NCBI GenBank assembly: GCA_002269645.1
Contig: NIVC01003258.1
Span: forward strand, 1-64,000
Direction: 5' to 3'
DNA from: Macrostomum lignano
Lineage: Eukaryota
DNA length: 64,000 nt
Shown here: one piece after another, positions 15,848 through 46,400 of the stretch
Numbering within the stretch: the stretch's first letter is position 1
Layout: the number at the start of each line of letters is the position of its first letter
Position numbers and translations under genes: made by a program
The notes under the pieces: generated by a model
Database searches by the model: none
What the model was told of the DNA's origin: nothing
The model's input: the letters and a program-made list of their open reading frames with translations, nothing else

Positions 15848-16734
15848 TTGAGACGACAAATTTGTTTCTTTTGTTTCTCTCTATACGAGCGTTAGTTTCA
15901 CTGTGATGGCGAAAAACGATACTGATAATGAACTTATTGGCACACTATATAATACATGACATGCCATGCATGGCTATGACATGCATCGAATTTCTGCTAA
16001 CACCTCCTGCTTAATTTAAACCTATTTTTTAAGTCTGTTCGATTTTGTTTTACTGCGTGATAATTGTAGTTTGTTTTTCTAGTCAGACGTCAAACTGGAC
16101 GCTCTGTACTGAGTCTTACTTAGTAGCTGCAACATGTTAATTATTGCACATATTCTTTGACATACTCGCACATGCAAGTTTCATAGTTTAGTTTATTTAG
16201 TTATAGAAGTTTAATTCGTAAAATTCGTTAAGTCTAATTCGTTTTATCGGTTCTTTCTCACAAAAATCTGCGTAAAAAATCAGATTTTTCATCGAAGTTT
16301 TGCTATACACATGCAACTATAATTTTTACCTCTACACCCCCTGTTACTATAAAAGCAAGCTCCGAGTGGTAAAATTTTCAAAAGTGAAAATTTCCTGCTG
16401 TTGAATCAACAGCGCTGTTTAAACACCGAAAATCGGCTGGTTGAGCAAACAAATTCCTACCAAGTTGAATAAAAGCACTGCTTTTCCACCCCCTCTTTTT
16501 ACACTGGTTTTTGACAGATAATTTTTTTTAAGAACTAATATTAGCTCTCGCTGTAAGTTTTGCTCCTTTCTCATTTTTCATGGAATTCGCGTCGAATGCG
16601 AAGTAAAATGCAAATTTGTGCACAGAAACGTTTTTGCAGCGATTAAATTGTAGCTTGGGGCATATGCGGAACTTTAATTCGAGGAATTTTAATTGGCACG
16701 TATGGGCGCCAATATTTGGTGTTTTCGTGGGCAC

Positions 16735-17838
16735 GGCGTCCCTGTCTCTTGGTGGGCGCCTCTGTCTCTTGGTGAGCGCCTCTGTCTATTGGTGGGCGCC
16801 CCTGTCTCTTCTTGGTGGGCGCCCCTGTCTCGGTGGGCGCCCCTGTCTCGGTGGGCGTCCCTGTCTTGGTGGGCGCCCCTGTCTCTTGGTGGGCGCCCCT
16901 GTCTCTTGGTGGGCGACCCTGTCTCTTGGTGGGCGCCCCTGTCTCTTGGTGGGCGTCCCTGTCTTGGTGGGCGCCCCTGTCTCTTGGTGGGCGCCCCTGT
17001 CTCTTGGTGGGCGCCCCTGTCTCTTGGTGGGAGCCCCTGTCTCTTGGTAGGCGCCCCTGTCTCTTGGTGGGAGCCCCTGTCTCTTGGTGGGCGCCCCTGT
17101 CTCTTGGTGGGCGCCCCTGTCTCTTGGTGGGCGCCCCTGTCTCTTGGTGGGCGCCCCTGTCTCTTGGTGGGCGCCCCTGTCTCTTGGTGGGAGCCCCTGT
17201 CTCTTGGTGGGCGCCCCTGTCTCTTGGTGGGCGCCCCTGTCTCTTGGTAGGCGCTGTCTCTTGTTGGGCGCCCCTGTCTCTTGGTGGGCGCCCCTGTCTC
17301 TTGGTGGGCGCCCCTGTCTCTTGGTGGGCGCCCCTGTCTCTTGGTGGGCGCCCCTGTCTCTTGGTGGGAGCCCCTGTCTCTTGGTGGGCGCCCCTGTCTC
17401 TTGGTGGGCGCCCCTGTCTCTTGGTGGGCGCCCCTGTCTCTTGGTGGGCGCCCCTGTCTCTTGGTGGGCGCCCCTGTCTCTTGTTGGGCGCCCCTGTCTC
17501 TTGGTGGGCGCCCCTGTCTCTTGGTGGGCGCCCCTGTCTCTTGGTGGGCGCCCCTGTCTCTTGGTGGGCGCCCCTGTCTCTTGGTGGGCGCCCCTGTCTC
17601 TTGGTGGGAGCCCCTGTCTCTTGGTAGGCGCTGTCTCTTGTTGGGCGCCCCTGTCTCTTGGTGGGCGCCCCTGTCTCTTGGTGGGCGCCCCTGTCTCTTG
17701 GTGGGCGCCCCTGTCTCTTGGTGGGCGTCCCTGTCTCTTGGTGGGCGCCCCTGTCTCTTGGTGGGCGTCCCTGTCTCTTGGTGGGCGCCCCTGTCTCTTG
17801 GTGGGCGTCCCTGTCTCTTGGTGGGCGCCCCTGTCTCG
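16735..17838. repeat. Minisatellite, 20-bp unit GGTGGGCGCCCCTGTCTCTT, about 55 copies
   Basis: Direct inspection; highly homogeneous units. Confidence 0.95.
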
Positions 17839-18124
17839 CTGAATAGGTGGCAAAATTTAGGATTCTGACATTCTTCAAAGTCATGGCCGGTTAACTCTTT
17901 CAAATATTTTCTGGAGGAGCGCAACTTATTTGGAGACCATTAATTGGAGGTAAGGGGTGCATGCGATCCCCTGAAACATTTCTGCTTACACCATTTATGG
18001 AAGCAAAGAAACGTTTGCTGAAGAGGAAAAATTACAGAGTTAATATTTACTAGGCTTATATACATGCAATACTAATACGACTTCTAATATAACAGATTGC
18101 ATGCAACTGCTCTAATGGGCAGAT

Positions 18125-20063: not shown

Positions 20064-21317
20064 CAGTGTTGCATTGGGCACTTCCGTTACCGAGTAACTT
20101 GTAAATGGTAACGCAAGTTACTTTTTCGTAAAGCGTTCCTTACGCAAGTTACTTTCCTATTTTGGTAACGGAGTAACGGTAAGTTACTCAAATTTCGGAA
20201 GTCCGTTACAGTTACTTTGCAACAATCGCAATATTTAAATTTAAAACTGATATGCTTAGCTATTACGCCAGTTGTCACATTTTTAGCATTTTTCATTCCT
20301 AAATTCAAAACTAAGTGAATAATATCATACGGTTACGCTGTAATTAATAAAGAAATACTTGAAACATGTTTTTACTTTGTTATTTTCGGTAAAATATTTT
20401 TGCTTTTCGTTTTTAAGTTAATAAAAATATTTTGTTTAGTTCTTAGAAACAAACAACCAAAGAAAGAAATTCATCTGTAGTCTCCACAAATCCACTCAGT
20501 GATCGACGTAGCCAGGAATTTTAATTGGGGGGGGGGCGGGTTGGCCTGGCTGGCCATGCCTCATGCCATTGCCACTTTTAGCGCCGCAGGCACTCATTTT
20601 AGCGCCGCAAGCACTCATTTAAGCGCCGCAGGCACTCATTTAAGCGCCGCAGGCACTCAATCGCCTCATGGTTTTTGGTACCCGCCACGCCCAACCCCAT
20701 CCCAGCTAGGTGGGGTGTCTTGCAGGTGGGGTGAAGTTGCCGCCCCAACGATTGTTAAGGCGGCCTCCCTGGCTACACCACTAAAGTCCACTGGCACTGC
20801 ACTGCACAATAATTTAATATTAGTGATAATAATTGAAAATAAATAAAAAGACTAGTAAAGCAGACCGTAGAGTGGAGTAAAGCCAGGTACTTATTACGAG
20901 CGATGTATTATCAAGGACAACTGAAGTTACGTTAAGTTGTCCTTGTGTATTATAACTTATAATGTTATTAAAAATTAAATTGCGTTTTGCCTTTAACGTT
21001 TCTGACCTTCAGCTTCTCTTCTTTTTACGCAAAGGGCCTAAAGTGATTAAAATTTAATACAGTTACTGAAATTGATGTTGTTGTATTCTTCCTCCTGGCT
21101 TTCGCGATCATTTGTGCTGTTCCATCACATTTGCAATGTTAAAAAAGCAGAAAATTTTGTTAATAACATAGGTAACGGAAGTAAGTAACGGAAGTAACTT
21201 AAAAGTTACCGGGTTTTTGTTCAAAGTTACTAGGCTAACGTAAGTTACTTTTTAAAAAGTGGTAACTTAAGTTACAGTTAACGCAAGTTACTTTTTTGAG
21301 TAACTTGCCCAACACTG
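20064..21317. mobile_element. Non-autonomous hAT-type element (MITE)
   Basis: Termini CAGTGTTG...CAACACTG; exact 8-bp TSD ATTTTTAT at 20056-20063 and 21318-21325; clustered subterminal GTAAC/GTTAC motifs at both ends. Confidence 0.85.
20497..20783. mobile_element. Small hAT-like MITE nested in the 20064-21317 element
   Basis: Imperfect TIRs CAGTG..CGTAGCCAGG / CCTGGCTACACCACT; near-TSD AAATCCAC vs AAGTCCAC; internal ~21-bp tandem (AGCGCCGCAGGCACTCATTT). Confidence 0.55.
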
Positions 21318-28700: not shown

Positions 28701-29603
28701 CCATTAGGCTAGCACACTCCCACAGCCATTAGGCTACCACACTTCCACAGCCATGACGTACTCACAAATGCATTTGAAAAGTACACAAAGAACTGGCATT
28801 AAAAACTCCACAACCTCAAAAACAGGGTTGGATTGTCGCGTTCAAGCCGCACCGCCAGTTTCCCCTGGACATGGCCGGCTTCGCCATCAATTTGCAGCTG
28901 CTGCATGAGCGACCGGCAGCCAAACTGGCCTACAAGGTTGAAAGAGGATTTCAGGTATCGGATTTGCTCGCATTAGCTAGCTCTAGTCATTTGAGTATCC
29001 ATTTGAAATTGTATAATTGGATATCTGCTGATTTGGGATATCTACTGATTTGGGATATCTGCTGATTTGGGATATCTACTGATTTGGGATATCTGCTGAT
29101 TTGGGATATCTACTGATTTGGGATATCTGCTGATTTGGGATATCTACTGATTTGGGATATCTACTAATTAGGGATATCTGCTGATTTGGGAAATCTACTG
29201 GTTTGGGATATCTACTGGTTTGGGATGTCTGCTGATTTGGGAAATCTACTGGTTTGGGATATCTACTGGTTTGGGATATCTGCTGATTTGGGAAATCTAC
29301 TGGTTTGGGAAATCTACTGGTTTGGGATATCTACTGGTTTGGGATATCTGCTGATTTGGGATATCTACCATGCGCAGATTCTTAATAGTATGTAATTAAA
29401 ATAATTACGCCGTTTCAACGCATCAACAGGAGAGCCTGCTGTTAACCAGCCTGGGCGTCCGTCAGTCTGACCTGGAAGCTCGGGCCAACGATTGCAGCAG
29501 AATTCTTGTCTGGCACACCAGAACAGCGCCGCCAAAGCTTAATAATGTTGCCCTGCTGGCTGAACGGGGGCTGACACTGCCGCCAGTGATTGGCCATGTG
29601 TGA
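25773..29603 (+). CDS. B3GAT: Beta-1,3-glucuronyltransferase (GlcAT-I/P family, GT43), join(25773..25999,27052..27475,28826..28954,29430..29603)
   Basis: Family motifs PTIYVVT, QRAELTRL, HWLVVED, QRNLA, YIADDDNTY, VSVWPV, FPLDMAGFA, ILVWHTRT. N-terminal transmembrane segment; all junctions GT-AG and phase-compatible. The start codon is the least certain part. Confidence 0.9.
26338..26937. repeat. Intronic 16-17-bp tandem array (GTGTCGGAGATATGAA) with partial inverted ends; possible foldback/MULE relic
   Basis: Left end GGGGGTCTA...TTTCATATCTCTGACACTTCA is the reverse complement of the array unit; right end ...AAACCCCC; no matching TSD found. Confidence 0.6.
27585..28755. repeat. Two abutting intronic minisatellites: 20-bp GGCTACCAGAATAGTCATTA then 25-bp GGCTACCACACTCTCACAGCCATTA
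   Basis: Direct inspection; both share the core ATTAGGCTACCA; switch near 28135. Confidence 0.95.
29020..29365. repeat. Intronic 17-bp minisatellite TACTGATTTGGGATATC
   Basis: Direct inspection; B3GAT intron 3. Confidence 0.9.
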
Positions 29604-29604
29604 T

Positions 29605-30380
29605 TGATTAGGGGATGTCTGTCTATTAGAGAATTGTCGATTAGGGGATGTCTGTCTATTAGAGAATTGTCGATTAGGGGATGTCTGTCTATTAGAGAAT
29701 TGTCGATTAGGGATGTCTGTCTATTAGAGTATTGTCGATTAGGGAATGTCTGTCTATTAGAGAATCGTCGATTAGGGGATGTCTGTCTATTAGAGGATTT
29801 CTGATTAGGGGATGTCTGTCTATTGGAGGATTTCTGATTAGGGGATGTCTGTCTATTAGAGGATTTTTTATTAGGGGATGTCTGTCTATTAGAGGATTAC
29901 TGATTAGAGGATGTCTGTCTATTAGAGTATTACTGATTAGGGGATGTCTGTCTATTAGAGGATTTCTGATTAAGGGATGTCTGTCTAATTAGAGGATTTC
30001 TGATTAGGGGATGTCCGTCTATTGGAGGATTACTGATTAGGGGATGTCTGTCTATTAGAGAATTGTCGATTAGGGGATGTCTGTCTATTAGAGAATCGTC
30101 GATTAGGGGATGTCTGTCTATTAGAGAATCGTCGATTAGGGGATGTCTGTCTATTAGAGAATCGTCGATTAGGGGATGTCTGTCTATTAGAGAATCGTCG
30201 ATTAGGGGATGTCTGTCTATTAGAGAATCGTCGATTAGGGGATGTCTGTCTATTAGAGAATCGTCGATTAGGGGATGTCTGTCTATTAGACGATTTCTGA
30301 TTAGGGGATGTCTGTCTAATTAGAGGATTTCTGATTAGGGGATGTCCGTCTATTGGAGGATTACTGATTAGGGGATGTCT
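29605..30380. repeat. About 33-bp minisatellite GATTAGGGGATGTCTGTCTATTAGAGAATCGTC starting right after the B3GAT stop codon
   Basis: Direct inspection. Confidence 0.9.
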
Positions 30381-30859
30381 GCTGATTACGGGAAATCCAC
30401 CATTACTTTTGACGTTAAGTGCCCTTTAAAAAGTTCAAATTAATCTCGTTGCTTCTCCCTCGTATTTGACTTGGCATGTAGCTTTGCGAACTCTCATAAA
30501 CGCTTAACTACTTTTCAGTAGCATAGTTCCGCTTTTTTAACTATCTGTTAGACTATTTTGCAAGAATATAATTTATATAATCGCACGGTTCTGTATGCAA
30601 TCGTTCACTTCCTTTGTTTATGAAATCAGACGCATGTGCATTTTAAGCTTATAGCATATATATACCCATGTATGCTATTCTATAGCTATTTATGATTTCT
30701 CCTTTGACTTTTTTACATACATCTCGCAGCTTCCAAACACCAAGTTTGCACCCGTGCTCTGCTGCTTAGCAAGCGAAAATAAACTCTTAATGCGCATATC
30801 CATACACGATAGATTTGTTTGGTGATTGTGCTTGCTTTTTACTAAATTAGTTACAACTA

Positions 30860-31737
30860 CTGATTTTAGGGATATCTGCTGATTTTAGGGATATCTGCTG
30901 ATTTTAGGGATATCTACTGATTTTAGAGATTTTAGGGATATCTACTGATTTTAGGGATTTTAGGGATATCTACTGATTTTAGGGATTTTAGGGATATCTA
31001 CTGATTTTAGGGATTTTAGGGATATCTACTGATTTTAGGGATTTTAGGGATATCTACTGATTTTAGGGATTTTAGGGATATCTACTGATTTTAGGGATTT
31101 TAAGGACATCTACTGATTTTAGGGATATCTACTGGTTTCAGAGATATCTACTGATTTTAGAGATATCTACTGATTTTAGGGATATCTACTGATTTTAGGG
31201 ATTTTAGGGATATCTACTGATTTTAGGGATTTTAGGGATATCTACTGATTTTAGGGATTTTAGGGATATCTACTGATTTTAGGGATTTTAGGGATATCTA
31301 CTGATTTTAGGGATTTTAGGGATATCTACTGATTTTAGGGATTTTAGGGACATCTACTGATTTTAGGGATATCTACTGATTTTAGGGATTTTAGGGATAT
31401 CTACTGATTTTAGGGATTTTAGGGATATCTACTGATTTTAGGGATTTTAGGGACATCTACTGATTTTAGGGATATCTACTGATTTTAGGGATTTTAGGGA
31501 TATCTACTGATTTTAGGGATTTTAGGGATATCTACTGATTTTAGGGATTTTAGGGATATCTACTGATTTTAGGGATTTTAGGGATATCTACTGATTTTAG
31601 GGATTTTAGGGACATCTACTGATTTTAGGGATATCTACTGGTTTCAGAGATATCTACTGATTTTAGAGATATCTACTGGTGTTAGGGATATCTATTGGTG
31701 TTAGTGATATCTACTGAATTTAGGGATATCTACTGAT
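30860..31737. repeat. 19/28-bp minisatellite TACTGATTTTAGGGA(TTTTAGGGA)TATC
   Basis: Direct inspection; related to the 29020-29365 unit. Confidence 0.9.
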
Positions 31738-31803
31738 CTATCAATAAAGGCATTTAAAACATTAGGATATAAACTTTCTGCCATACAAAGCTACTTGGCC
31801 GTG

Positions 31804-34800
31804 ATGGAAGTGACAGTGCCATCAAGTGCCTATTGCGGCTTCTATAACAAGCCAAGCGGGCCCGGGACAAACCAGCAGAGTGTGTCCGATCTCATGCTTC
31901 AGCAGCAGGGTCAGCAGATTTCTGCTAAACGGCAGTACCGCGGCGGGCCGCCGCCACCCCACATGCTGCAGCCGTATCGACAGCAACAGCCGCAGTTTAA
32001 ACGAAAATTTAACAACGGTCTTGGTAGGAACAATAGTAGCGTTGTTGTTGCACCGCAGCGGCCGCCTGTGCAGCAGTTTCACTGCGAATTGTGCGACGCG
32101 AAATGCACTGGCGAGGCGATGTTTAAATTGCACAGAGAGGGTTCCAAGTACGTTTGAATTTTGTCTGCCAGTATGCCCGTCAGTATGCGGGTCTTAAAGT
32201 TTAAAAGTACAAAGTACCATTGACGCTGCTCTTCCATTGGTCCTTCAGTTGGTCCTGCTTGATTCCTTCAGTCACTTCAGTTGGTCCTGCTAGATTCCTT
32301 CAGGTACTTCAGTTGGTCCTGCTTGATTCCTTCAGGTACTTCAGTTGGTCCTGCTAGATTCCTTCAGTCACTTCAGTTGGTCCTGCTAGATTCCTTCAGG
32401 TACTTCAGTTGGTCCTGCTTGATTCCTTCAGGTACTTCAGTTGGTCCTGCTAGATTCCTTCAGTCACTTCAGTTGGTCCTGCTTGATTCCTTCATGTACT
32501 TCAATTGGTCCTGCTTGATTCCTTCAGGTACTTCAGTTGGTGCTGCTTGATTCCTTCAGGTACTTCAGTTGGTCCTGCTTGATTCCTTCATGTACTTCAA
32601 TTGGTCCTGCTTGATTCCTTCAGGTACTTCAGTTGGTGCTGCTTGATTCCTTCAGGTACTTCAGTTGGTCCTGCTAGATTCCTTCAGTCACTTCAGTTGG
32701 TCCTGCTTGATTCCTTCAGGTACTTCAGTTGGTGCTGCTTGATTCCTTCAGGTACTTCAGTTGGTCCTGCTAGATTCCTTCAGTCACTTCAGTTGGTCCT
32801 GCTTGATTCCTTCATGTACTTCAGTTGGTCCTGCTTGATTCCTTCAGGTACTTCAGTTGGTGCTGCTTGATTCCTTCAGGTACTTCAGTTGGTCCTGCTA
32901 GATTCCTTCAGTCACTTCAGTTGGTCCTGCTTGATTCCTTCATGTACTTCAGTTGGTCCTGCTAGATTCCTTCAGTCACTTCAGTTGGTCCTGCTTGATT
33001 CCTTCATGTACTTCAGTTGGTCCTGCTAGATTCCTTCAGTCACTTCAGTTGGTCCTGCTTGATTCCTTCATGTACTTCAATTGGTCCTGCTTGATTCCTT
33101 CAGGTACTTCAGTTGGTGCTGCTTGATTCCTTCAGGTACTTCAGTTGGTCCTGCTTGATTCCTTCAGGTACTTCAGTTGGTCCTGCTAGATTCCTTTATG
33201 TACTTCAGTTGGTCCTGCTTGATTTTTCGGCTCCTACTCTTGTTTTAAATGGAACTTTCAATTGCTTATGTATTTTCGCTTGCCAGGCACCTCAAGAAGG
33301 AAAAGGAGAAGAAATTCCGCGAACTAAGCGAAGCCAAAGACCCGGAAGTGTACTGCGACATTTGCAATTTAACACTGCACCCGGAGCTCATGAAATCGCA
33401 TCGGGCCGGGGTCAAGCATCGCAAAGCTGCTGCTGGGGCGCTCAACCGAGGCGGCAGCGGTGCTAAGAAATCGCCAACTGGAAAGTCTGCTCTACCACCT
33501 GGCATCTATCGATTGGACCCAGCGAAGAGTGCCGCGGATAAGGATAAGGTGAGTGCAGACTTTTATTACCGTGTAATTAGCTATGTAGCTTTATTTTATT
33601 GTTAACTTTACGGTAGTATTTTTTAGATTTTGTGTTTTGAGTTATCAGATATGTAGATGTGACTTATCAGATATCGGGTGTGACCTGACAGATATCAGGT
33701 GTGACCTGTCAGATATGCAGGTGTGACCTGTCAGATATGCAGGTGTGACTTGTCAGATATCAGATGTGACCTGTCAGATATGCAGGTGTGACCTGACAGA
33801 TATCAGGTGTGACCTGTCAGATATGCAGGTGTGACTTATCAGATATCAGATGTGACCTGTCAGATATGCAGGTGTGACTTGTCAAATGTCAGGTGTGACC
33901 TGTCAGATATCCAGGTGTGACTTGTCAGATGTCAGGTGTGACCTGTCAGATATGCAGGTGTGACTTGTCAAATGTCAGGTGTGACCTGTCAGATATCCAG
34001 GTGTGACTTGTCAGATGTCAGGTGTGACCTGTCAGATATCAGGTGTGACCTGACAGATATCAGGTGTGACCTGTCAGATATGCAGGTGTGACTTGTCAGA
34101 TATCAGATGTGACCTGTCAGATATGCAGGTGTGACTTGTCAAATGTCAGGTGTGACCTGTCAGATATCCAGGTGTGACTTGTCAGATGTCAGGTGTGACC
34201 TGTCAGATATGCAGGTGTGACTTGTCAGATGTCAGGTACGACCTGTCAGATATCAGGTGACCTGTCATGTATGCAGCGGTGACACCTGTCAGATGTCAGG
34301 TGAGACCTGTCAGATGTCAGGTGTGACTTGTCAGATATGCAGGTGTGACTTGTCAGATATGCAGGTGTGACCTGTCAGATATGCAGATGTGACCTGTCAG
34401 ACATTAGGTGTGACCTGTCAGATATGCAGATGTGACCTGTCAGACATCAGGTGTGACCTGTCAGACATGCAGGTATGACCCGTCAGATATGCAGGTGTGA
34501 CCTGTCAGACATGCAGGTATGACCTGTCAGATATGCAGGTGTGACCTGTCAGACATGCAGGTGTGACCTGTCAGATATCCAGGTGTGACCTGTCAGACAT
34601 GCAGGTGTGACCTGTCAGATATGCAGGTGTGACCTGTCAGATATGCAGGTGTGACCTGTCAGATATGCAGGTGTGACCTGTCAGACATGCAGGTGTGACC
34701 TGTCAGATATGCAGGTGTGACCTGTCAGATATGCAGGTGTGACCTGTCAGACATGCAGGTATGACCTGTCAGATATCCAGGTGTGACCTGTCAGACATGC

Positions 34801-37800
34801 AGGTGTGACCTGTCAGATATCAGGTATGACCTGTCAGGTATGCAGGTGTGACTTGTCAGACATCAGGTGTGACCTGTCAGACATCAGGTGTGACCTGTCA
34901 GACATCAGGTGTGACTTGTCAGACATCAGGTGTGACCTGTCAGACATCAGGTATTGATTAAAATTAAACAAACCAGCTATTGCGCAGCGCGTCTGAAGGC
35001 TGCGTACGGCTGTTCAGTTGAACTACCGATCATAAATTTCTCCTATCCTCACTGCAGCCTCCCGGCGGTGCCACTGAAGCCTCATCATCATCGGCTGCTA
35101 ACGAAACTGCTGCTACAGCTGATGCCCAGAATGGCACCCAGCAACAGGCAGTCACTGTGCAGTCAATAGAGCAATATCTGAGCAGCCTAACTAAAGAACA
35201 ATTGATTAAAAAACTGCTCAAACAATACCCAATGCGTTGCTCAGTTTGCAATGCAGATTTCGACGCGTTCAAAGAGGCCGAGTTGCATTTCAATTCTAAA
35301 GCTCACCGGATGGCCTTTCAAAAGCTTCAACGCGACCAGAGTGGGTGGTGCAGTGCATTGAACTTATTTAGCATAATTTCTTATATACTCGTATATATAT
35401 CTAATAATGCTCCGTATTTGCAGTTGTTGGCCTCAGCTCCTCAACAATTCCCGGAGCTTTGGGAAAACAACATTAAAATTACAATTCAAAAAAAGGTAAT
35501 TTAATGTCGTTATAGATTCGAATAATTACCGACACTGCTTTCTTCATCCTGTCCTTCCTAATTCCATTGCTGTTTATAAAACTCCTTTTTAATTGACAGC
35601 AAGGGTCCGCTTGAGGACAAGATTATTAGTTTAAAGGCTTCCAACTATCCTAGAACTGGGTCTAATGACTCATTGGTAGACCAACTCTTGGACGCGGAGC
35701 AAACATTGTTTACGTATTTAAAATATATACATCAGAGCGTTCGTCCTTCCTAATTCCCTTGCTGTTAGTATAATCTCTAAGTGACAGCAAGGGTTCGCTT
35801 GAGGACAAGATTAGCTTTCGGCTTCCAACTATCCTAGAGCTGAGTCTTTATAAATATTGGTAGACCAGCTCTTGGACGCGAAGCGAACATCTGAATTGAA
35901 ATTCTTATTAATTTTTAAACTCTCCCACCTGTCCTTCAGTAGTTGCCGTTGTCTCCCACCTGTCCTTCAGTAGTTGCCGGCTGTCTCCCACCTGTCCTTC
36001 AGTGGTTGCCGGCTGTCTCCCACCTGTCCTTCAGTGGTTGCCGGCTGTCTCCCACCTGTCCTTCAGTTGTTGCCGGCTGTCTCCCACCTGTCCTTCAGTG
36101 GTTGCCGGCTGTCTCCCACCTGTCCTTCAGTGGTTGCCGGCTGTCTCCCACCTGTCCTTCAGTAGTTGCCGTTGTCTCCCACCTGTCCTTCAGTGGTTGC
36201 CACTCTTTACCACCTGTCCAGTGGTTGCCACTACCACCTGTCCTCCAGTGGTTGCCGCTGTCTCTTACTGTGGTTGCCGCTGTCTCTTATCTGTCCTTCA
36301 GTAGTTGCCGCTGTCTCCCACCTGTCCTCTTTGGAAACGTGTCATCACTTTTAATAATAATTCTAAGGCTAAAACTACTCAATTTAGTTGTCAATGTCCT
36401 TCCTAATTCTCTCGCTGTTATAAACTCCTAAGTGACAGCAAGGGTTCGCTTGAGGACAAGATTATATTTAACAGGCTTCCAACTATCCTAGAACTGATTC
36501 TTTATGATTGAATGGTAGACCAGCTCTTGGACGCGAAGCGAACATTGAAATATCTTGATTTAATTTTAACTTCTTGCTCTGAGCTCTTTAGTTAAAGGAA
36601 ATACTTGTAGTCTAACTACAAAAGAAAGTTTAATTATTAGTTTATATAGGGTAATTATTCCAATCTGTATCGGTGTCAGTGGAGGGTAATTATTCCAATC
36701 TATATCGGTGTCAGTGGAGGGTAATTATTCCAATCTGTATCGCTGTCAGTGGAGGGTAATTATTCCAATCTGTATCAGTGTTAGTGGAGGGTAATTATTC
36801 CAATCTGTATCGGTGTCAGTGGAGGGTAATTATTCCAATCTGTATCAGTGTCAGTGGAGGGTAATTATTCCAATCTGTATCAGTGTCAGTGGAGGGTAAT
36901 TATTCCAATCTGTATTAGTGTCAGTGGAGGGTAATTATTCCAATCTGTATCAGTGTCAGTGGAGGGTAACGGTCTTCCTGTTTGTCAGTTTTATGTAGTT
37001 TCCCACATATAGGTCTTGGACTTTGACAGGAGTGCATGCAGGAACCTCAGTCCTTCCTAATTCCCTTGCTGCTATGGGAACTCCAATTGACAGCAAGGGT
37101 TCGCTTGAGGACAAAATTAGATTTAGGCTTCCAACTATCCTAGAACTGGATCTTGATGTGCGATCAGTAGGCCAGTTCTTGGACGCGAAGCAAACATACA
37201 CAATGTTGGAATGTTACCTGCTACTACTAGTGATGTACTATTGTTTCAGTATAGTACTGAATCAAGGCTGTAATACTGTATAATACTGTATCAAGGCTTG
37301 TTTCAGTGTAAGCCTTAATTGGAGTCGTGTCATAACTTTCCATATTTTTCAAAGGCTTAATCTACTCAACCTGATTGTCAATGTCCTTCCTAATTCCCTC
37401 GCTGTTATAAACTCCTAAGTGACAGCAAGGGTTCGCTTGAGGACAAGATTAGCTTTCGGCTTCCAACTATCCTAGAACTGAGTCTTTATAAATATTGGTA
37501 GACCAGCTCTTGGACGCGAAGCGAACATCTGAATTGAAATTCTTATTCACTTTTTTCAACTCTCATAACTGCTGTCCTTCAGTAGTTGCCGCTGTCTCCC
37601 ACGTGTCCCTCAGTGGTTGCCGCTGTCTCCCACGTGTCCCTCAGTGGTGCCGCTGTCTCCCACGTGTCCCTCAGTGGTTGCCGCTGTCTCCCACCTGTCC
37701 TTCAGTGGTTGCCGCTGTCTTCCACCTGTCCTTCAGTGGTTGCCGCTGTCTTCCACCTGTCCTTCAGTGGTTGCCGCTGTCTCCTACCTGTCCTGCAGTG

Positions 37801-38937
37801 GTTGCCGCTGTCTCCCACCCGTCCCTCAGTGGTTGCCGCTGTCTCCCACCTGTCCTTCAATGGTTGCCGCTGTCTCCTACCAGTCCTTCAGTAGTTGCCG
37901 CTGTGTCCCACCTTTCCTTCAGTGGTTGCCGCTGTCTCCTACCTGTCCTGCAGTGGTTGCCGCTGTCTCCCACCCGTCCCTCAGTGGTTGCCGCTGTCTC
38001 CCACCTGTCCTTCAATGGTTGCCGCTGTCTCCTACCAGTCCTTCAGTAGTTGCCGCTGTGTCCCACCTTTCCTTCAGTGGTTGCCGCTGTCTCCTACCTG
38101 TCCTGCAGTGGTTGCCGCTATCTTCTACCTGTCCTGCAGTGCTTGCCGCCGTCTCCCACCTGTCCTTCAGTGGTTGCCGCTGTCTTCCACGTGTCCCTCA
38201 GTGGTTGCGGCTGTCTCCCACTTGTCCTTTAGTGGTTGCCGCTATCTCCCACCTGTCCTCCAGTGGTTGCTGCTGTCTCCCACCTGTCCTTCATTAGTTG
38301 CCGCTGTCTCCCACCTGTCCTTCAGTAGTTGCCGCTGTCTCTCACCTGTCCTTCAGTGGTTGCCGCTGTCTCTCACCTGTCCTTCAGTGGTTGCCGCTGT
38401 CTCCCACCTGTCCTTCAGTGGTTACCGCTATCTCTCATTTGTCTTTGATTGGAAACATGTCATAATTTTCGATAATTCTAAGGCTAAAGCTACTCAATTT
38501 GGTTGTCAATGTCCTTCCTAATTCCCTCGCTGTTATAAACTCCTAAGTGACAGCAAGGGTTCGCTTGAGGACAAGATTAGCTTTCGGCTTCCAACTATCC
38601 TAGAACTGAGTCTTTGAATTATTGTTAGACCAGCTCTTGGACGCGAAGCGAACAATTAAATTTTATCTTAACTTACTTTCATTCCCCAATTCAATCCCCT
38701 CTTAATGCCCCAATTTTAATTCCCTGTGTTTAATTCGCAGTTCGCAGCAAAGGCTTCGTGTGCGAAGTGTGCGATATAGCTGTTACCTCCCAAGACCTGA
38801 TGGAGGCGCACCTGAAAGGCTACAGGCACGCTCTGCGCCAGCACGGTGGCTACATACCCGAAGGTCACGAGTTCTATGCTAAATACATGAAGCGGCAAGA
38901 GGCCATGCTTAGTTATCGTAAAATTAGAATCAACTAA
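31804..38937 (+). CDS. Matrin/U1-type C2H2 zinc-finger protein with four fingers (ZNF346/ZNF385-like RNA-binding protein), join(31804..32147,33287..33548,35058..35340,38741..38937)
   Basis: Four fingers with long His-His spacing: CELCDAKCTGEAMFKLHREGSKH, CDICNLTLHPELMKSHRAGVKH, CSVCNADFDAFKEAELHFNSKAH, CEVCDIAVTSQDLMEAHLKGYRH. Junction phases are compatible; the exon 3-4 junction is the least certain. Confidence 0.75.
32240..33225. repeat. Intronic 32-bp minisatellite CTTCAGTTGGTCCTGCTTGATTCCTTCAGGTA
   Basis: Direct inspection. Confidence 0.95.
33660..34952. repeat. Intronic 21-22-bp minisatellite CAGGTGTGACCTGTCAGATATG
   Basis: Direct inspection. Confidence 0.95.
35550..35708 (+). ncRNA. 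Box H/ACA snoRNA, copy 1 (variant)
   Basis: Hairpin TGTCCT...TTGCTGT/ACAGCAA...AGGACA, H box AGATTA, second hairpin GCTTC...GGAGC, ACA plus 3 nt; one substitution in the first pocket (TCCGCTT). Confidence 0.75.
35743..35892 (+). ncRNA. Box H/ACA snoRNA, copy 2
   Basis: Perfect 10-bp upper stem CCCTTGCTGT/ACAGCAAGGG; lower stem GTCCT/AGGAC; H box AGATTA 14 nt below the upper stem; second hairpin ending GAAGCGA-ACA-TCT. Confidence 0.85.
35925..36330. repeat. 31-bp minisatellite CAGTGGTTGCCGCTGTCTCCCACCTGTCCTT (array 1)
   Basis: Direct inspection; lies between snoRNA copies 2 and 3. Confidence 0.9.
36395..36547 (+). ncRNA. Box H/ACA snoRNA, copy 3
   Basis: Same two-hairpin fold, H box AGATTA, terminal ACA-TTG. 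Confidence 0.8.
36648..36968. repeat. 35-bp minisatellite GGAGGGTAATTATTCCAATCTGTATCAGTGTCAGT
   Basis: Direct inspection; about 9 copies. Confidence 0.9.
37050..37199 (+). ncRNA. Box H/ACA snoRNA, copy 4
   Basis: H box AAATTA; second upper stem fully paired (AGAACTGG/CCAGTTCT) with a different loop; terminal ACA-TAC. Confidence 0.8.
37382..37530 (+). ncRNA. Box H/ACA snoRNA, copy 5
   Basis: Near-identical to copy 2; H box AGATTA; ACA-TCT. Confidence 0.85.
37570..38440. repeat. 31-bp minisatellite CAGTGGTTGCCGCTGTCTCCCACCTGTCCTT (array 2)
   Basis: Same unit as 35925-36330; lies between snoRNA copies 5 and 6. Confidence 0.9.
38510..38657 (+). ncRNA. Box H/ACA snoRNA, copy 6
   Basis: Same fold and boxes; ACA-ATT ends about 83 nt upstream of the acceptor at 38740. 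Confidence 0.85.
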
Positions 38938-39144
38938 TTTATTATAGTGCATACTCTGCGTGCTGTGTCCCCGTGCGTAGGAGACTTGACTTTTCAAAAT
39001 TAATCTAGCAATGATGGTTTGTATTCTTTATTCTTTATTTGCTAAAAACTACTTATGCGATGGAGTTGAAATTATGCTTATTGTCTATCTGTGTGCTTAG
39101 CCTTTGGCTCTGTGATTAACATAGATATGTGTTGAGAATGCTCC

Positions 39145-39362
39145 CACATCCTCAGTTGCTGGGCCAGCCTCTCAGATCATCAGTTGCTAGGCCAGCCTCC
39201 CAAATCCTCAGTTGCTGGGCCAGCCTCCCAGATCCTCAGTTGCTGGGCCAACCTCCTAGATCCTCAGCTGCTAGGCCAGCCTCCCAGATCCTCAGTTGCT
39301 GGGCCAACCTCCCAGATCCTCAGTTGCTAGGCCAGCCTCCCAGATCCTCAGTTGCTGGGCCG
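39145..39362. repeat. 28-bp minisatellite CCAGATCCTCAGTTGCTGGGCCAGCCTC
   Basis: Direct inspection; reverse complement of the 61120-63240 unit. Confidence 0.9.
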
Positions 39363-39959
39363 CCCAAGCAAATTAACACAACACCTCACAGTAATACACA
39401 CTTTATATTCATAAATTAAGTTGCATAAAAATTTGAGACTTTGGCTAAGCTCGATAGTGAAAATGTGTTTAGGGTTTAAATTTAGATGATAGAGTTTAGT
39501 ATTTAATAATTTAATACTTTCCCTTGCATCTTGAAGCTTTGTTATTCGATGCGAACACGTTTTAAAGTAGTGCGGAATTAACGTATTTAATTAAAATCGA
39601 TAATATAAAATTTTGTACAAGGCTACAAGATGATAAAAATGCGTTCTGTTTGTTAACGTTTTTGCCTATTATAAATTTTGTAAGTATTTATATTGCTATT
39701 AGTAAGCAAGCGTATAGTTGCTTAAGATTATTAATAGACAAGTTGTTTTTCTATAATTATGTTCAAAGCAATTTTTGTATGAGTGTTTTTCTGCCTGGCC
39801 TCCGCTATTCAAGGAGTTGGTTTGTTTTTTGCGCTTAATAAATCATTGAATGTTGTAACTTTATTAGCTGAATATATAATTATACAGACTGAAAATAGTA
39901 AGTAAGTGCGTTATTGTTTTCTGTTTTATAGTCCTATACTTTGACTCCCTCTGTATCAC

Positions 39960-41660
39960 GCCTCTTCATCTATCTCCCTCTCCTACCCATCTCTATCTCC
40001 CTTTCCATCTCCCCATCTCTATCTCCCTCTCCTACCCATCTCTATCTCCCTTTCCATCTCCCCATCTCTATCTCCCTCTCCTACCCATCTCTATCTCCCT
40101 TTCCATCTCCCCATCTCTATCTCCCTCTCCTACCCATCTCTATCTCCCTTTCCATCTCCCCATCTCTATCTCCCTCTCCTACCCATCTCTATCTCCCTCT
40201 CCTACCCATCTCTATCTCCCTCTCCTACCCATCTCTATCTCCCTTTCCATCTCCCCATCTCTATCTCCCTCTCCTACCCATCTCTATCTCCCTTTCCATC
40301 TCCCCATCTCTATCTCCCTCTCCTACCCATCTCTATCTCCCTCTCCATCTCCCCATCTCTATCTCCCTCTCCTACCCATCTCTATCTCCCTCTCCTACCC
40401 ATCTCTATCTCCCTCTCCATCTCCCCATCTCTATCTCCCCTCTCTATCTCCCTATCCATCTCCCCATCTCTATCTCCCTCTCCTACCCATCTCTATCTCC
40501 CTCTCCTACCCATCTCTATCTCCCTCTCCTACCCATCTCTATCTCCCTTTCCATCTCCCCATCTCTATCTCCCTCTCCTACCCATCTCTATCTCCCTTTC
40601 CATCTCCCCATCTCTATCTCCCTCTCCTACCCATCTCTATCTCCCTTTCCATCTCCCCATCTCTATCTCCCTCTCTTACCCATCTCTATCTCCCTCTCCT
40701 ACCCATCTCTATCTCCCTCTCCATCTCCCCATCTCTATCTCCCCTCTCTATCTCCCTTTCCATCTCCCCATCTCTATCTCCCTCTCCATCTCCCCATCTT
40801 TATCTCCCTCTCCATCTCCCCATCTCTATCTCCCTCTTCATCTCCCCATCTCTATCTCCCTCTCCATCTCCCCATCTCTATCTACCTCTACATCTCCCCA
40901 TCTCTATCTCCCTCTTCATCTCCCCATCTCTATCTCCCTCTCCATCTCCCCATCTCTATCTACCTCTACATCTCCCCATCTATATCTACCTCTACATCTC
41001 CCCATCTCTATCTCCCTCTCAATCTCCCCATCTCTATCTCCCTCTCCTACCCATCTCTATCTCCCTCTCCATCTCCCCATCTCTATCTCCCTCTCCTACC
41101 CATCTCTATCTCCCTCCCCATCTCTATCTCCCTCCCCATCTCCCCATCTCTATCTCCCTCCCCATCTCCCCATCTCTATCTCCCTCTCCATCTCCCCATC
41201 TCTATCTCCCTTTCCATCTCCCCATCTCTATCTCCCTCTCCATCTCCCCATCTCTATCTCCCTCTCCTACCCATCTCTATCTCCCTCCCCATCTCCCCAT
41301 CTCTATCTCCCTCTCCTACCCATCTCTATCTCCCTCCCCATCTCCCCATCTCTATCTCCCTCCCCATCTCCCCATCTCTATCTCCCTCTCCATCTCCCCA
41401 TCTCTATCTCCCTTTCCATCTCCCCATCTCTATCTCCCTCTCCATCTCCCCATCTCTATCTCCCTCTCCTACCCATCTCTATCTCCCTCCCCATCTCCCC
41501 ATCTCTATCTCCCTCCCCATCTCCCCATCTCTATCTCCCTCTCCATCTCCCCATCTCTATCTCCCTTTCCATCTCCCCATCTCTATCTCCCTCTCCATCT
41601 CCCCATCTCTATCTCCCTCTCCATCTCCCCATCTCTATCTCCCTCTTCATCTCCCCTCTC
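39960..41660. repeat. Pyrimidine-rich satellite (CCATCTCTATCTCCCTCT-type units)
   Basis: Direct inspection; + strand is almost devoid of G. Confidence 0.95.
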
Positions 41661-42479
41661 TATCTCGCACATGTCTCTCCTCTCTTTCTTTCCTTCGACC
41701 CCCGCTGTCTATTTTCTTTCTTTTTATCACCTAACTAAAGTGTTTAACTGTCTTTGCGTCTAAATCATTTGCTAAACTATTCGTTTTCTTTTAATTAGCA
41801 ACCTAGTACAAAAACACTGACATAAAAGATAAATAAACACAATAAAAGTTAATGTATTCATTTTTCGTTACGTATTCTAAATGGCTAATTTGTCATTTAT
41901 TGACCATGAAGGCCAACATTTAAGGCAACTCCGATGTGTACAGTTACAGCGCTCAGGACATATCTTAGTTTTACATAGTACATATCTATCTATCTATTCA
42001 CATATTTATCTAGCTAGAATTCATATTTTCGGAATTGCCCAAAGTATTGCCTGAAGGGATTTGCCATTGATACTTGAGGGAATCCGTCTAAAAGAACATC
42101 GTCCTAATAAATACTCGTAGCAGAGATAGGTCGAGTTTTGATTTTGCTGGTTTGACAGCCTTTGGATCTCAGCAAATACTGGTACTGGAAGCAGATCAAA
42201 TTTTGGTCTTTAAATATCAAATTGTTGCTAGGTAAATAGGTGAATAAGTAGATAGATGCATAGATAGATAGATACATAGAAGATAGATAGGTAGATACAT
42301 AGGTAGATACATAGGTAGATAGATAGATATAGATATAAAAACAAAGGAAAAATTCACGCACACAGTTCGACTAGGTTTATTGGAACCGATATTACGGCCT
42401 AGACTAGGCTTTCTTTAGGGTTTAATTATTTATTTAATAACAACAAAAATGCAAAAAAGCTAATTAAAAGAGTCAAAGA

Positions 42480-42573
42480 TAGATGGATAGATAGATAGAT
42501 AGATAGATAAGGTAGATAGATAGATAGATAAGGTAGATAGATAGATAGATAGGTAGATAGATAGATAGGTAGG

Positions 42574-42615
<42 letters not shown>

Positions 42616-42763
42616 TATAGATAGATAGATATGTAGATAGATAGATAGATAGGTAGATAGATAGATAAGGTAGATAGATAGATAGATAAGGTAGATAGAT
42701 AGATAGATAGATAGGTAGATAGATAGATAGATAAATAGGTAGATAGATAGATAGGTAGGTAGG

Positions 42764-42845
<82 letters not shown>

Positions 42846-42967
42846 TATAGATAGATAGATATGTAGGTAGATAGATAGATAGATAGGTAGATAGATAGAT
42901 AGATAGGTAGATAGATAGATAGATAGGTAGATAGATAGATAGATGGATAGATAGATAGATATGTAGG

Positions 42968-43000
<33 letters not shown>

Positions 43001-43005
43001 GGATG

Positions 43006-43080
<75 letters not shown>

Positions 43081-43103
43081 GGATAGATAGATAGATATGT
43101 AGG

Positions 43104-43140
<37 letters not shown>

Positions 43141-43205
43141 GGATAGATAGGTAGATAGATATTGGCGGATGGATAGATCTTAATGTAGCATAATAGATAG
43201 GTAGA
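42480..43205. repeat. (GATA)n microsatellite
   Basis: Direct inspection; a shorter tract also lies at ~42245-42335. Confidence 0.95.
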
Positions 43206-43419
43206 ATGAGTAGGCAAGCAGTCATGCTGTATAGTTATCGCGCTCAGACAGGGTGTACAGCGGTCCTGACTCCAATCGCCAGGCATGTACACTGTGCCAA
43301 GGCATTTGGCTCACATAGGTGTGAATCGTGCACAGAATCAAACCCGGGTACTCAGGCTTCAATGTTCGCTAATAGCAATCCACAAAGTTGAATTTAGTTA
43401 ATAAACTAATTAATAATTC

Positions 43420-46400
43420 ATGGCCAGCCACATTGTTGCCACAAGTCGCAGGCACCAGCTTGACAGGTGGGGCGTGTTCAGCCTGATTGAACCGGAGCTG
43501 TGGGATCAGATTTCCTGGGCAGTTGTGTTTGGAAACAACGGCAGCGAAGCAATCTTAGTTGCTAACAGAGAGCAGGGCTCAGATTGTCGAGTGCTAAGCG
43601 TTGGCACCAATTCTAGCGGATGCCTTGGATTGGGAGATGCTCAGAGTTGTCTGAATCCGACTGAGGTATGTACTGTTCTCATTGGGTGCAGCTGCTATTA
43701 GTCAGGACTTGTTATGAAGATTTGATTGGTTGGGAAAAGACAGCATGCGTTTTTATTAGTCAACGCGGATCTCAGCATGGGTTCTGATTGGTCAGAGAAA
43801 ATCAGCATGGGTTCTGATTGGTCAGAAAATCAGCATGGGTTCTGATTGGTCCGGAAAAGTCAGCATGGGTTCTGATTGGTCAGAAAATCAGCATAGGTTC
43901 TGATTGGTCAGAGAAAATCAGCATGGGTTCTGATTGGTCAGAGAAAATCAGCATGGGTTCTGATTGGTCAGAGAAAATCAGCATGGGTTCTGATTGGTCA
44001 GAGAAAATCAGCATGGGTTCTGATTGGTCAGAAAATCAGCATGGGTTCTGATTGGTCAGAAAATCAGCATGGGTTCTGATTGGTCAGAGAAAATCAGCAT
44101 GGGTTCTGATTGGTCAGAAAATCAGCATGGGTTCTGATTGGTCCGGAAAATTCAGCATGGGTTCTGATTGGTCAGAAAATCAGCATGGATTCTGATTGGT
44201 CAGAAAATCAGCATGGGTTCTGATTGGTCCGGAAAAGTCAGCATGGGTTCTGATTGGTCAGAAAATCAGCATGGGTTCTAATTGGTCAGAGAAAATCAGC
44301 ATGGGTTCTGATTGGTCAGAGAAAATCAGCATGGGTTCTGATTGGTCAGAGAAAATCAGCATGGGTTCTGATTGGTCAGAGAAAATCAGCATGGGTTCTG
44401 ATTGGTCAGAGAAAATCAGCATAGGTTCTGATTGGTCAGAGAAAATCAGCATGGGTTCTGATTGGTTCTGACTTATCCATGCAGTTAACAGTCGGGTAAC
44501 CTTCCGCAAACCTCTACCTCTACATTCAGATCGAAGCCCTTCGCGGCATCGTGTTAGTCGACTTAGCCTGTGGCTCCGGGCCTCACTGCCTGGCGCTGAC
44601 CGCAGATGGCAGACTCTACTGCTGGGGTCACAATGGCTATGGACAGCTTGGCAACGGTGGCACCGTCCAGTTGCTGACGCCCGCGCCTTGCGCCGGCCTA
44701 GATGACGGTGTTCGGGTGCTGTCGATTGCCTGCGGTGGCAATCACTCACTGGCTTTGGTGGCCTCGTGCTCCAGCGGTGGCAACGGCAACAGTTGCTGCG
44801 TACAGGGCGAAGTGTTCGCCTGGGGCCAGAATAACTACGGCCAGGTGGGCTGCGGCGCGGCCGCGGCTACTCAGGCCACGCCTAGGCGGGCTGGCGGCTC
44901 GCTGGCCAGCGGCAGGCCGGTGCGAATCGTGGCCTGCTGTCAGACTTCCTCTTTTGCCGTGGACGAAGTCGGAGAGGTGAGCAATGTTTCTTTGGGTTTC
45001 TCTGGGTTTCTTTGATGTGCCGCCGCAGTCTCTTATCTCTGGTTTCTTTGATGTGCCGCCGTAGTCTCTTATATCTGGTTTCTTTGATGTGCCGCCATAT
45101 CTTTGGTTTCTTTGATGTTCAGCCGCAGCCTCTTATCTCTGGTTTCTTTGGTGTGCCTCCCATTATCTCTTACCTATATGGTTTCTTTGATGTGCCACCG
45201 TAGTCTCTTATATCTGGTTTCTTTGATGTGCCGCTCCTTATGTCTTATCTCTGGTTTCTTTGATGTGCCGCTCCTTATGTCTTATCTCTGGTTTCTTTGA
45301 TGTGCCGCTCCTTATCTCTTACCTCTGGTTTCTTAGATGTGCCGCCGTAGTCTCTTATCTCGGGTTTCTTTGATGTGCTGCCGTAGTCTCTTATATCTGG
45401 ATTCTTTGGTGTGCCGCCATAGTCTCTTATCTCTGGATTCTTTAATGTGGCGCCCAAATCAACATATACTACCTTATCACTTTCGATCCACCAAGGTGCA
45501 CGCCTGGGGCTTCAACGGCAGCGGCCAGTTGGGCACAGGCGGTTGCGCAAATCAGCCGTTGCCGATCCGACTCGACAACTGGCCCAGGGGAGGCGTCGGA
45601 GGCGTCAGCGGCGCTGGCGGAGGCGTGGCCCGTCTGGCCTGTGGCGCCGGTCACGTGCTGGCTGTGTCCACCAGCGGCCGCCTGTTCGCCTGGGGCGCGA
45701 ACTCGCACGGCCAGCTGGGCACTGGGGGCAAGTCGAACTCGTCGGCACCAACGGCAGTCAATATTCCTTCTGGCGTTGGGGTAAGCCTAGAGACATGGTA
45801 GAGTCATTTGCAAACAACTCTCTAGTGACTCTTGTGCATCTGAGGCGACTCTTGTGACTTTTTAACAACTCAAACGCGTCAAATGCGATGCAGAGGCGAC
45901 TGTTGCATCACAATCGCGTCACGTGAGTTGTAGAATCGTAAATTAGTCGCAAAAAGTCGTCCAAGAATCGTTGTGCTGGCCCGGTTAACTTCCTACAACT
46001 CAGTAGGCTATTTAGAGTGCAATTAGAGTTAAATAGGCTAAAACTGAGTGTTCATTGCCCGATTAAAAGACGCGATCTGCAACGCGTCTGAAATAAACGA
46101 CTTTGGGGCGACGCAAGTGACTCCGGGACGCTTCTTGGCCTCGGTACCGTTTTCATTGGGCTACTGATTTAGGAGTTAATTTTCCGTATAATATAGTGTA
46201 GTGGACTAGCCATCTCAGCCCCCCATGGGGGAAAGTACTAAATGAAGAAATAGAGTTTTCCCTCTTTGTGCCACGACATCTCAGGAACTCCCCTGGGAGC
46301 CTTGTCATTCCCTTATTTTACTCGTAGTAGCATATAACGCATTTCGGTATTTCCATAATTGCCCAGGTTCAAGGTCGGGGCGACGATGTCGCTGCCTATC

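Follow-up and report, generated by a model that had tools for sequence, protein, structure and literature searches.

This work describes a predicted array of small nucleolar RNA (snoRNA) genes in the free-living flatworm Macrostomum lignano, identified in a stretch of genomic DNA of 64,000 nucleotides (nt) (positions 1 to 64,000 of contig NIVC01003258.1, assembly GCA_002269645.1; referred to here as the window). The last intron of a gene for a matrin/JAZ-type zinc-finger protein contains six units, 147 to 158 nt long, which are very probably paralogs that all encode the same pseudouridylation guide of the box H/ACA class, with the pocket of the first hairpin (pocket 1) acting as the guide. We lean, with modest conviction, toward the second pocket (pocket 2) being an active guide as well. 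There is also good reason to regard the array as the flatworm counterpart of Drosophila snoRNA Psi28S-1192, with a 5′ hairpin that corresponds to that of vertebrate SNORA52; we hold this assignment with high confidence. The snoRNA annotation is well supported, and it comes from a phylum whose snoRNAs have barely been described and from a flatworm that serves as a model for regeneration and stem-cell work.

Unit limits were set from the G of GUCC to three nt beyond the ACA box. Direct reading and alignment of positions 35300 to 38900 gave the same layout for every unit, namely, a hairpin, an H box, a second hairpin, and an ACA box. The first hairpin is composed of a lower stem GUCCUU/GAGGAC, with one A between GAGGAC and the H box; a pocket with strands CCUAAUU and UUCGCUU; and an upper stem of 10 base pairs (bp) with a variable loop and the 3′ arm ACAGCAAGGG. 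The H box conforms to ANANNA, being AGAUUA in five of the six window copies and AAAUUA in copy 4, and is followed by a hinge of variable sequence. In the second hairpin, the lower stem (GCUUC/GAAGC) supports pocket strands CAACUAUCCU and UGGACGC and an upper stem of 11 bp with one bulge (arms AGAACUG(A)GUCU and AGACCAGCUCU), which again carries a variable loop; after the lower stem come two nt, the ACA, and three further nt. All 12 copies known from two loci (see below) carry the ACA without variation, and the homology of divergent copies stops within a few nt 3′ of it. In every copy, both hairpins have a gap of exactly 14 nt from upper stem to box (UUCGCUUGAGGACA ahead of the H box and UGGACGCGAAGCGA ahead of the ACA). 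This gap falls in the 14 to 16 nt expected from the top of a pocket to the H or ACA box and fits the molecular-ruler distance given in the rules for H/ACA RNAs, which comprise a ruler of 15 to 16 nt and a minimum of 3 bp on either side of the pocket (PMC7991803). An earlier note, made from the letters of the DNA alone, had placed six copies with this box architecture at the same positions. All six lie on the plus strand, and both the positions and the spacing of the boxes were recovered here for every copy.

What is conserved coincides exactly with the predicted RNA. When the six copies were used to build a covariance model, it returned exactly six matches in the window and, in the corresponding intron of another M. 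lignano locus (L001; NIVC01000027.1), six copies in the same order. Variable columns number 3 of 63 in the lower stems, pockets, and boxes versus 41 of 53 in the loops and hinge (Fisher p = 8e-17, a value that is overstated, as the copies are non-independent samples). Diversity per site is likewise 0 to 0.08 in the pockets, lower stems, and boxes versus 0.3 to 0.6 in the loops, hinge, 3′ tail, and flanks. The flanks are essentially unalignable between copies 1, 2, and 4 and the group formed by copies 3, 5, and 6, and the homology of copies 1, 2, and 4 stops at the RNA ends. With regard to folding, the RNAalifold consensus for the six copies is hairpin-hinge-hairpin-tail, and the minimum free energy folds of single sequences have z scores of -3.2 to -4.2 relative to dinucleotide shuffles. 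In the set of 12 copies, 93.7% of cells are paired in the named structure, compared to 35 to 48% when partners are slid. The contrast between preserved stems, boxes, and pockets and divergent apical loops, which had been remarked on in the earlier note, is therefore confirmed by the column counts; for the pockets, it applies in general, with a change in the pocket 1 3′ strand of copy 1.

All six copies also resemble known H/ACA families, beyond what chance would give. In a permissive search of the region, each independently matched SNORA52 (RF00419) below threshold, at 27.9 to 34.4 bits (E = 1e-4 to 5e-3; gathering score, 71 bits). The best match to snopsi28S-1192 (RF00542) was that of copy 2, at 34.7 bits (E = 0.0014; gathering score, 44 bits), with the other copies at 19.5 to 30.4 bits; two of the six copies match at E < 0.05. 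For SNORA52, only the 5′ hairpin aligns convincingly. The pocket 1 strands are the same as in the SNORA52 consensus and differ from that of RF00542 by one base per strand. Several pairs of the 5′ hairpin are kept despite changes on both sides, for example, a lower-stem pair that is U-A in the flatworm versus A-U in human and fly, and an upper-stem pair that is U-A in the flatworm versus G-C in the Rfam consensus. These apparently compensatory changes are the only evidence of this kind. A permissive Rfam search of 28 to 46 kb gave no other snoRNAs in the neighboring introns.

For target prediction, we used four surrogate eukaryotic ribosomal DNA (rDNA) contigs, which Rfam confirms as eukaryotic rDNA; they cover the ribosomal RNA (rRNA) of the large subunit (LSU) without its 3′ third, and the M. 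lignano 28S sequence is not among them. These contigs came from a scan of metagenomes in which the pattern was the reverse complement of the pocket 2 5′ strand with AAGCGAATGATTAG following within 15 to 45 nt, and they read ...GAAGUUUCCCUCAGGAUAGUUGG...GGUAAAGCGAAUGAUUAGAGG.... With every uridine scanned, the top-ranked site for pocket 1 was GCGAA[U]GAUUAG (target uridine in brackets) and that for pocket 2 was UUUCCC[U]CAGGAUAG; in each case, 1 of 300 shuffled guides reached the score. Pocket 1 forms 7+5 Watson-Crick pairs, its 5′ strand pairing as CCUAAU with the extra U left unpaired beside the upper stem. The 5′ strand of pocket 2 forms 10 pairs with the U variant of its target and 9 pairs plus an A.C mismatch with the commoner AGGAUAGCUGG. 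The earlier note had matched pocket 1 with AAGCGAA-UG-AUUAG (7+5 bp) and 10 of 11 nt of the pocket 2 5′ strand with a site in CCC-UC-AGGAUAG. This strand matches AGGAUAG(C/U)UGG over 10 to 11 nt, and both sites rank first on the surrogate rDNA. The consensus pockets of RF00542 pick both flatworm target uridines as well, with the fly pocket 2 forming 7+6 pairs. In the surrogate rDNAs, the two predicted uridines lie 45 to 49 nt apart. We take yeast Psi1004 and Psi960 to correspond to these two sequence contexts, with a spacing of 44 nt, which is consistent with the distance in the surrogates. Two pseudouridines are predicted in M. lignano 28S rRNA, at AAGCGAAUGAUUAG and CCC[U]CAGG.

A number of observations weigh against an array of dual-guide snoRNA genes. 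Across the whole window, every Rfam match falls short of the gathering score of its family. By the manner of their retrieval, the surrogate contigs were preselected for the U variant AGGAUAGUUGG, and the register of pocket 1 and the strand limits of the RF00542 pocket 2 were set after the target had been seen. Scans of pocket 1 with other registers or scoring were not significant (272 of 300 and 84 of 500 shuffles reached the score), and a scan for contiguous pairs did not recover the pocket 2 site; these earlier scans either treated the extra unpaired U of pocket 1 as paired or required an unbroken run of pairs starting at the top, and the corrected scan is partly post hoc. The covariation check proposed in the earlier note gave no informative compensatory change among the six copies (RNAalifold) or the 12 copies (pair counts, where shuffles equaled the observed value), because the copies are too alike; support for the structure consequently rests on fold energy, the slid-partner controls, and comparison to the Rfam consensus. 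Between the two loci, substitutions are only marginally rarer at functional positions (3 of 378) than elsewhere (19 of 764; p = 0.065). The functional changes between loci include hits to pocket 1, with a U-to-C change in the 3′ strand of window copy 1 (UCCGCUU) and another in the 5′ strand of L001 copy 2, and one to the H box, which reads AGAUUG in L001 copy 3. Damaging-looking changes in some copies fit redundancy among them.

The remaining counterevidence concerns pocket 2, whose 3′ strand pairs weakly. Read in order, it gives a U.C mismatch beside the target, G-C, G-C, A-U, a C.U mismatch, G.U, and C-G, or five of seven pairs with three contiguous; the estimate of about 3 bp in the earlier note describes the contiguous run correctly but omits the two further pairs beyond the mismatch. 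Within the free RNA, moreover, the GGA of this strand can pair with the UCC of the 5′ strand, and RNAalifold closes UCC/GGA in this way, leaving a 6+3 loop only 10 nt from the ACA. Along with the pocket 2 site missed by the contiguous-pair scan, these features favor a snoRNA in which only hairpin 1 guides, hairpin 2 serves ribonucleoprotein (RNP) assembly or stability, and the rRNA match AGGAUAG(C/U)UGG is a relic or hairpin 2 has some other target. We regard such a single-guide RNA as possible but doubtful. The perfect 10-nt match of the 5′ strand is top-ranked, with 0 of 300 and 1 of 300 shuffles reaching the score; both strands of pocket 2 are invariant in 12 of 12 copies, although the invariance of the 3′ strand may be structural; the 14-nt spacing fits the geometry of an open pocket; and pocket 2 of the fly consensus forms 7+6 pairs around this uridine.

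Other explanations question the units as genes rather than one pocket. If the array grew by minisatellite-driven segmental duplication, most copies could be silent snoRNA pseudogenes, with one or two at most making RNA. The copies do lie inside duplicated [snoRNA + satellite] blocks with mosaic flanks, some carry the pocket or H-box changes given above, and constraint between haplotypes is marginal. We nonetheless judge this improbable: the functional columns are nearly invariant even in copies 1 and 4, the oldest and most divergent, where loops and flanks are saturated, and all six positions are kept in both loci. Many nematode intronic snoRNAs have their own promoters, and the units might similarly be transcribed independently from intronic promoters instead of arising by processing of the host intron. 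Copies 3, 5, and 6 do have about 35 nt of conserved 5′ flank in common, but block duplication explains this sharing, and the 5′ flanks of copies 1, 2, and 4 are unrelated (diversity of 0.55 per site). No upstream motif common to the four classes of 5′ flank was seen, which argues against a promoter for each copy and leaves this explanation very unlikely. It is hardly credible that the units are a dispersed repeat, a transposon fragment, or coding exons with no RNA gene. The region is extremely repeat-rich, and mechanically called open reading frames (ORFs) cross the units; however, no part of the interval is present in the annotated host protein, the ORFs vary from copy to copy, and H/ACA architecture, Rfam resemblance, and rRNA complementarity are not expected of a transposon fragment. 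The ORFs were dismissed as spurious in the earlier note for good reason, and those over 35.5 to 38.7 kb can be flagged as noncoding.

Placement of all six units in a single intron, claimed previously, follows from the annotated M. lignano protein of the host gene (P0001). In a tblastn search, this protein stops at 35339 (...QRDQ) and restarts at 38740 (IRSKGFVCEV). The split codon A/TT and the join ...QRDQ/IRSKGF... place the donor at 35340/GTGGGT and the acceptor at CGCAG/38741. The first snoRNA starts 210 nt past the donor, and all six are on the host-gene strand. From 31783 to 38937, the host gene encodes four U1/matrin/JAZ-type zinc fingers. A search with the concatenated exons returned only M. 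lignano proteins (five predicted proteins), and so no cross-species covariation is possible. Several of these predicted proteins have frame-shifted or alternative exon joins, which suggests several host-gene copies (hidden polyploidy) and imperfect gene models. At the second locus, positions 13169 to 16261 of L001 match 35550 to 38660 of the window, and orthologous copies are 96 to 100% identical. The spacings that bear minisatellites differ (803, 582, and 1,033 nt in L001 versus 653, 655, and 1,128 nt in the window), whereas the other spacings are kept. L001 is a second haplotype or homeolog, and the snoRNA array explains why the order of intron blocks is conserved between haplotypes despite varying minisatellite lengths.

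Comparison to known systems shows what is shared and what is particular to the flatworm. Like Drosophila Psi28S-1192, the units are two-hairpin H/ACA RNAs with a similar pocket 1 (UCUAAU/CUCGCUU in the fly and CCUAAU/UUCGCUU in the flatworm), a lower stem GUCC.../...GGAC, UAUCC in the second hairpin, and the same two LSU uridines as predicted targets. They differ in that the best score stays short of the gathering score (34.7 versus 44 bits), the sequences of the upper stems and loops show no relationship, and the fly pocket 2 3′ strand, gaGAAAC, pairs with GUUUCCC far better than does the flatworm UGGACGC. SNORA52 (ACA52) is a single-copy gene in an RPLP2 intron, with 28S U3823 as its curated target. 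Its 5′-hairpin pocket strands, UCCUAAU and UUCGCUUG, are identical to those of the flatworm, the lower stem is the same but for one compensated pair, and the H-box spacing is the same; in contrast, the score is 34 bits against a gathering score of 71, and the 3′ hairpin and its pocket are unrelated.

In yeast, H/ACA guides presumably modify the same two rRNA sites, but as two separate, independently transcribed snoRNAs, each with a second site (Psi1124 and Psi986). The guide assignments that the earlier note gave, 25S Psi1004 to snR5 and Psi960 to snR8, agree with the table in PMC5699541. Single introns that hold clusters of snoRNA genes are known from rice and Chlamydomonas, and two snoRNAs share one intron in Plasmodium, arrangements that depart from the animal rule of one gene per intron (PMC7038934; PMC2656528, the latter for plants and Plasmodium). 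For Drosophila, intronic clusters of H/ACA genes are reported by Huang et al. (2004, J Mol Biol 341:669). The flatworm array is like these clusters in having several snoRNA genes per intron in the host orientation; it differs in that the six are isoforms of one snoRNA, separated by long minisatellite spacers in a flatworm host. Our literature search found nothing on flatworm snoRNA organization or on Macrostomum snoRNAs; of the eight papers that mention both Macrostomum and snoRNA, none names snoRNA in its title. The array thus adds a member to a known family, the type of arrangement is also known, and the phylum is one for which we found no earlier description. Of the idea that a dual-guide snoRNA had been amplified inside one intron in a novel way, the complementarity and the intronic position stand; the novelty does not, either for the arrangement, which is known from Drosophila, plants, and Plasmodium, or for the design, as the fly psi28S-1192 consensus carries the same pair of pockets.

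Processing, expression, and modification of the RNAs are what we infer from these sequence features. In the mechanism we favor, the units would be transcribed within the pre-mRNA of the zinc-finger gene, the last intron would be excised, and an H/ACA core (dyskerin/Nop10/Nhp2/Gar1) would assemble on each unit. Cuts in the spacers would separate the units, and exonucleases would trim each to the bound core; because six units share one intron, we infer that release must include cuts in the minisatellite spacers. Hairpin 1 would pair with LSU AAGCGAA-[U]G-AUUAG and bring the Psi1004-equivalent uridine to the 15th nt ahead of the H box. For hairpin 2, the most likely partner would be (G)UUUCC(C)-[U]C-AGGAUAG(C/U)UG, and the uridine placed would be the equivalent of Psi960, 45 to 49 nt upstream in the same rRNA domain. 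RNPs containing RNAs of ~150 nt would then isomerize both uridines in LSU domain II. As the pockets of the RF00542 consensus point to these two uridines as well, the two-pocket, two-site design was probably passed down from an ancestor shared by flatworms and flies rather than being new, which suggests that the dual-pocket design of fly Psi28S-1192 predates the flatworm-arthropod split.

A broader scenario, which we put forward only tentatively, is that pairing of Psi1004-type and Psi960-type guides in one RNA is ancestral in protostomes (possibly in bilaterians), with later splitting or replacement of this design in yeast and vertebrates. The same speculative scenario has the two modifications, 45 to 49 nt apart in LSU domain II, coupled. 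It further has flatworms, like plants and flies, freeing several snoRNAs per intron by endonucleolytic cuts in the spacers, with the minisatellites both driving copy-number change by unequal crossing-over and supplying sequence for cutting or spacing. Whatever the fate of this scenario, the array breaks the vertebrate habit of one snoRNA per intron in a flatworm lineage. It leaves the current understanding of H/ACA RNPs unchallenged and adds a modest evolutionary note. Coordinates of the array and its surroundings are collected in Table 1.

Table 1. Positions of the snoRNA copies, host-gene parts, and spacer minisatellites in the window
Feature	Position	Strand	Remarks
Host gene exons, from P0001	about 31783-32154, 33282-33548, 35055-35340, 38741-38937	+	
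Exon 3 (upstream coding) of zf-met/JAZ-type zinc-finger host gene	35055-35340	+	
Host intron (last), 3,400 nt, GT...AG	35341-38740	+	Six snoRNA copies and three minisatellite arrays
H/ACA snoRNA copy 1	35551-35708	+	Most divergent; pocket 1 3′ strand UCCGCUU, extra stem mismatches, longer hinge
H/ACA snoRNA copy 2	35743-35892	+	Best Rfam scores; G-C in upper stem 2 where most copies have an A.C mismatch
Spacer minisatellite A, 31- to 32-nt unit	35921-36328	.	Between copies 2 and 3
H/ACA snoRNA copy 3	36396-36547	+	
Spacer minisatellite B, 35-nt unit	36648-36969	.	Between copies 3 and 4
H/ACA snoRNA copy 4	37050-37199	+	H box AAAUUA; A-U in upper stem 2 at the usually mismatched position
H/ACA snoRNA copy 5	37383-37530	+	Reference copy
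Copy 5 pocket 1	37389-37395 / 37432-37438	+	
Copy 5 H box	37446-37451	+	
Copy 5 pocket 2	37464-37473 / 37511-37517	+	
Copy 5 ACA	37525-37527	+	
Spacer minisatellite A′, 31-nt unit, about 28 copies	37572-38434	.	Between copies 5 and 6
H/ACA snoRNA copy 6	38511-38657	+	3′ end 83 nt before the 3′ splice site
Last coding exon	38741-38937	+	zf-met finger FVCEVCD...HLKGYRH, then stop

The spacers record how the array may have grown. Shared flanks show a duplicated block of the form [snoRNA - satellite A - snoRNA], to which satellite A′ belongs. Copy 5 is a mosaic (37344 to 37554): the 5′ half and the flank next to it resemble copies 3 and 6 (36357 to 36469 and 38472 to 38584; 89 to 96%), and the 3′ half with its flank resembles copy 2 (35777 to 35916; 98%), a pattern that suggests unequal crossing-over or gene conversion between copies. 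In the growth of the array, blocks of [snoRNA + minisatellite] would have undergone segmental duplication and unequal crossing-over. Individual copies would be redundant, and a few may be beginning to decay. The unit of minisatellite A, CTGTCCTTCAGTGGTTGCCGCTGTCTCCCAC, includes TGTCCTTC, an 8-mer identical to that at the snoRNA start, TGTCCTTCCTAA; the identity may be coincidental, or a snoRNA 5′ end may have given rise to the satellite.

Minisatellites with units of 17 to 36 nt fill nearly every intron and intergenic stretch near the host gene (29019 to 45454). Upstream of the array, they occur at 29606 to 30381 (33 nt), 32239 to 33224 (32 nt), and 33645 to 34952 (22/43 nt), and downstream at 39141 to 39361 (28 nt), 43772 to 44466 (30 nt), and 44999 to 45454 (36 nt). 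Many of these arrays give rise to long spurious ORFs. A 1.7-kb CT-rich array spans 39969 to 41666 and explains the GC skew of -0.92 at 40001 to 42000; an (AGAT)n tract lies at 42477 to 43161. Strand composition is likewise extreme at 16001 to 18000, where the AT skew is -0.44.

Within the host intron, positions 35424 to 35495 have the look of a 72-nt cassette micro-exon, with a good acceptor (tatttgcag), a donor (AAG/gtaatt), and two open frames. This candidate was rejected, as the annotated protein joins 35340 directly to 38741. Downstream of the host gene, the plus-strand neighbor encodes a protein with RCC1 repeats and a BTB domain (RCBTB/RLD-like), located at 43420 to 45015 and beyond in the window and at 20998 to 25857 in L001. 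The upstream neighbor in L001 is a glycosyltransferase family 43 gene, and the downstream gene order is common to both loci.

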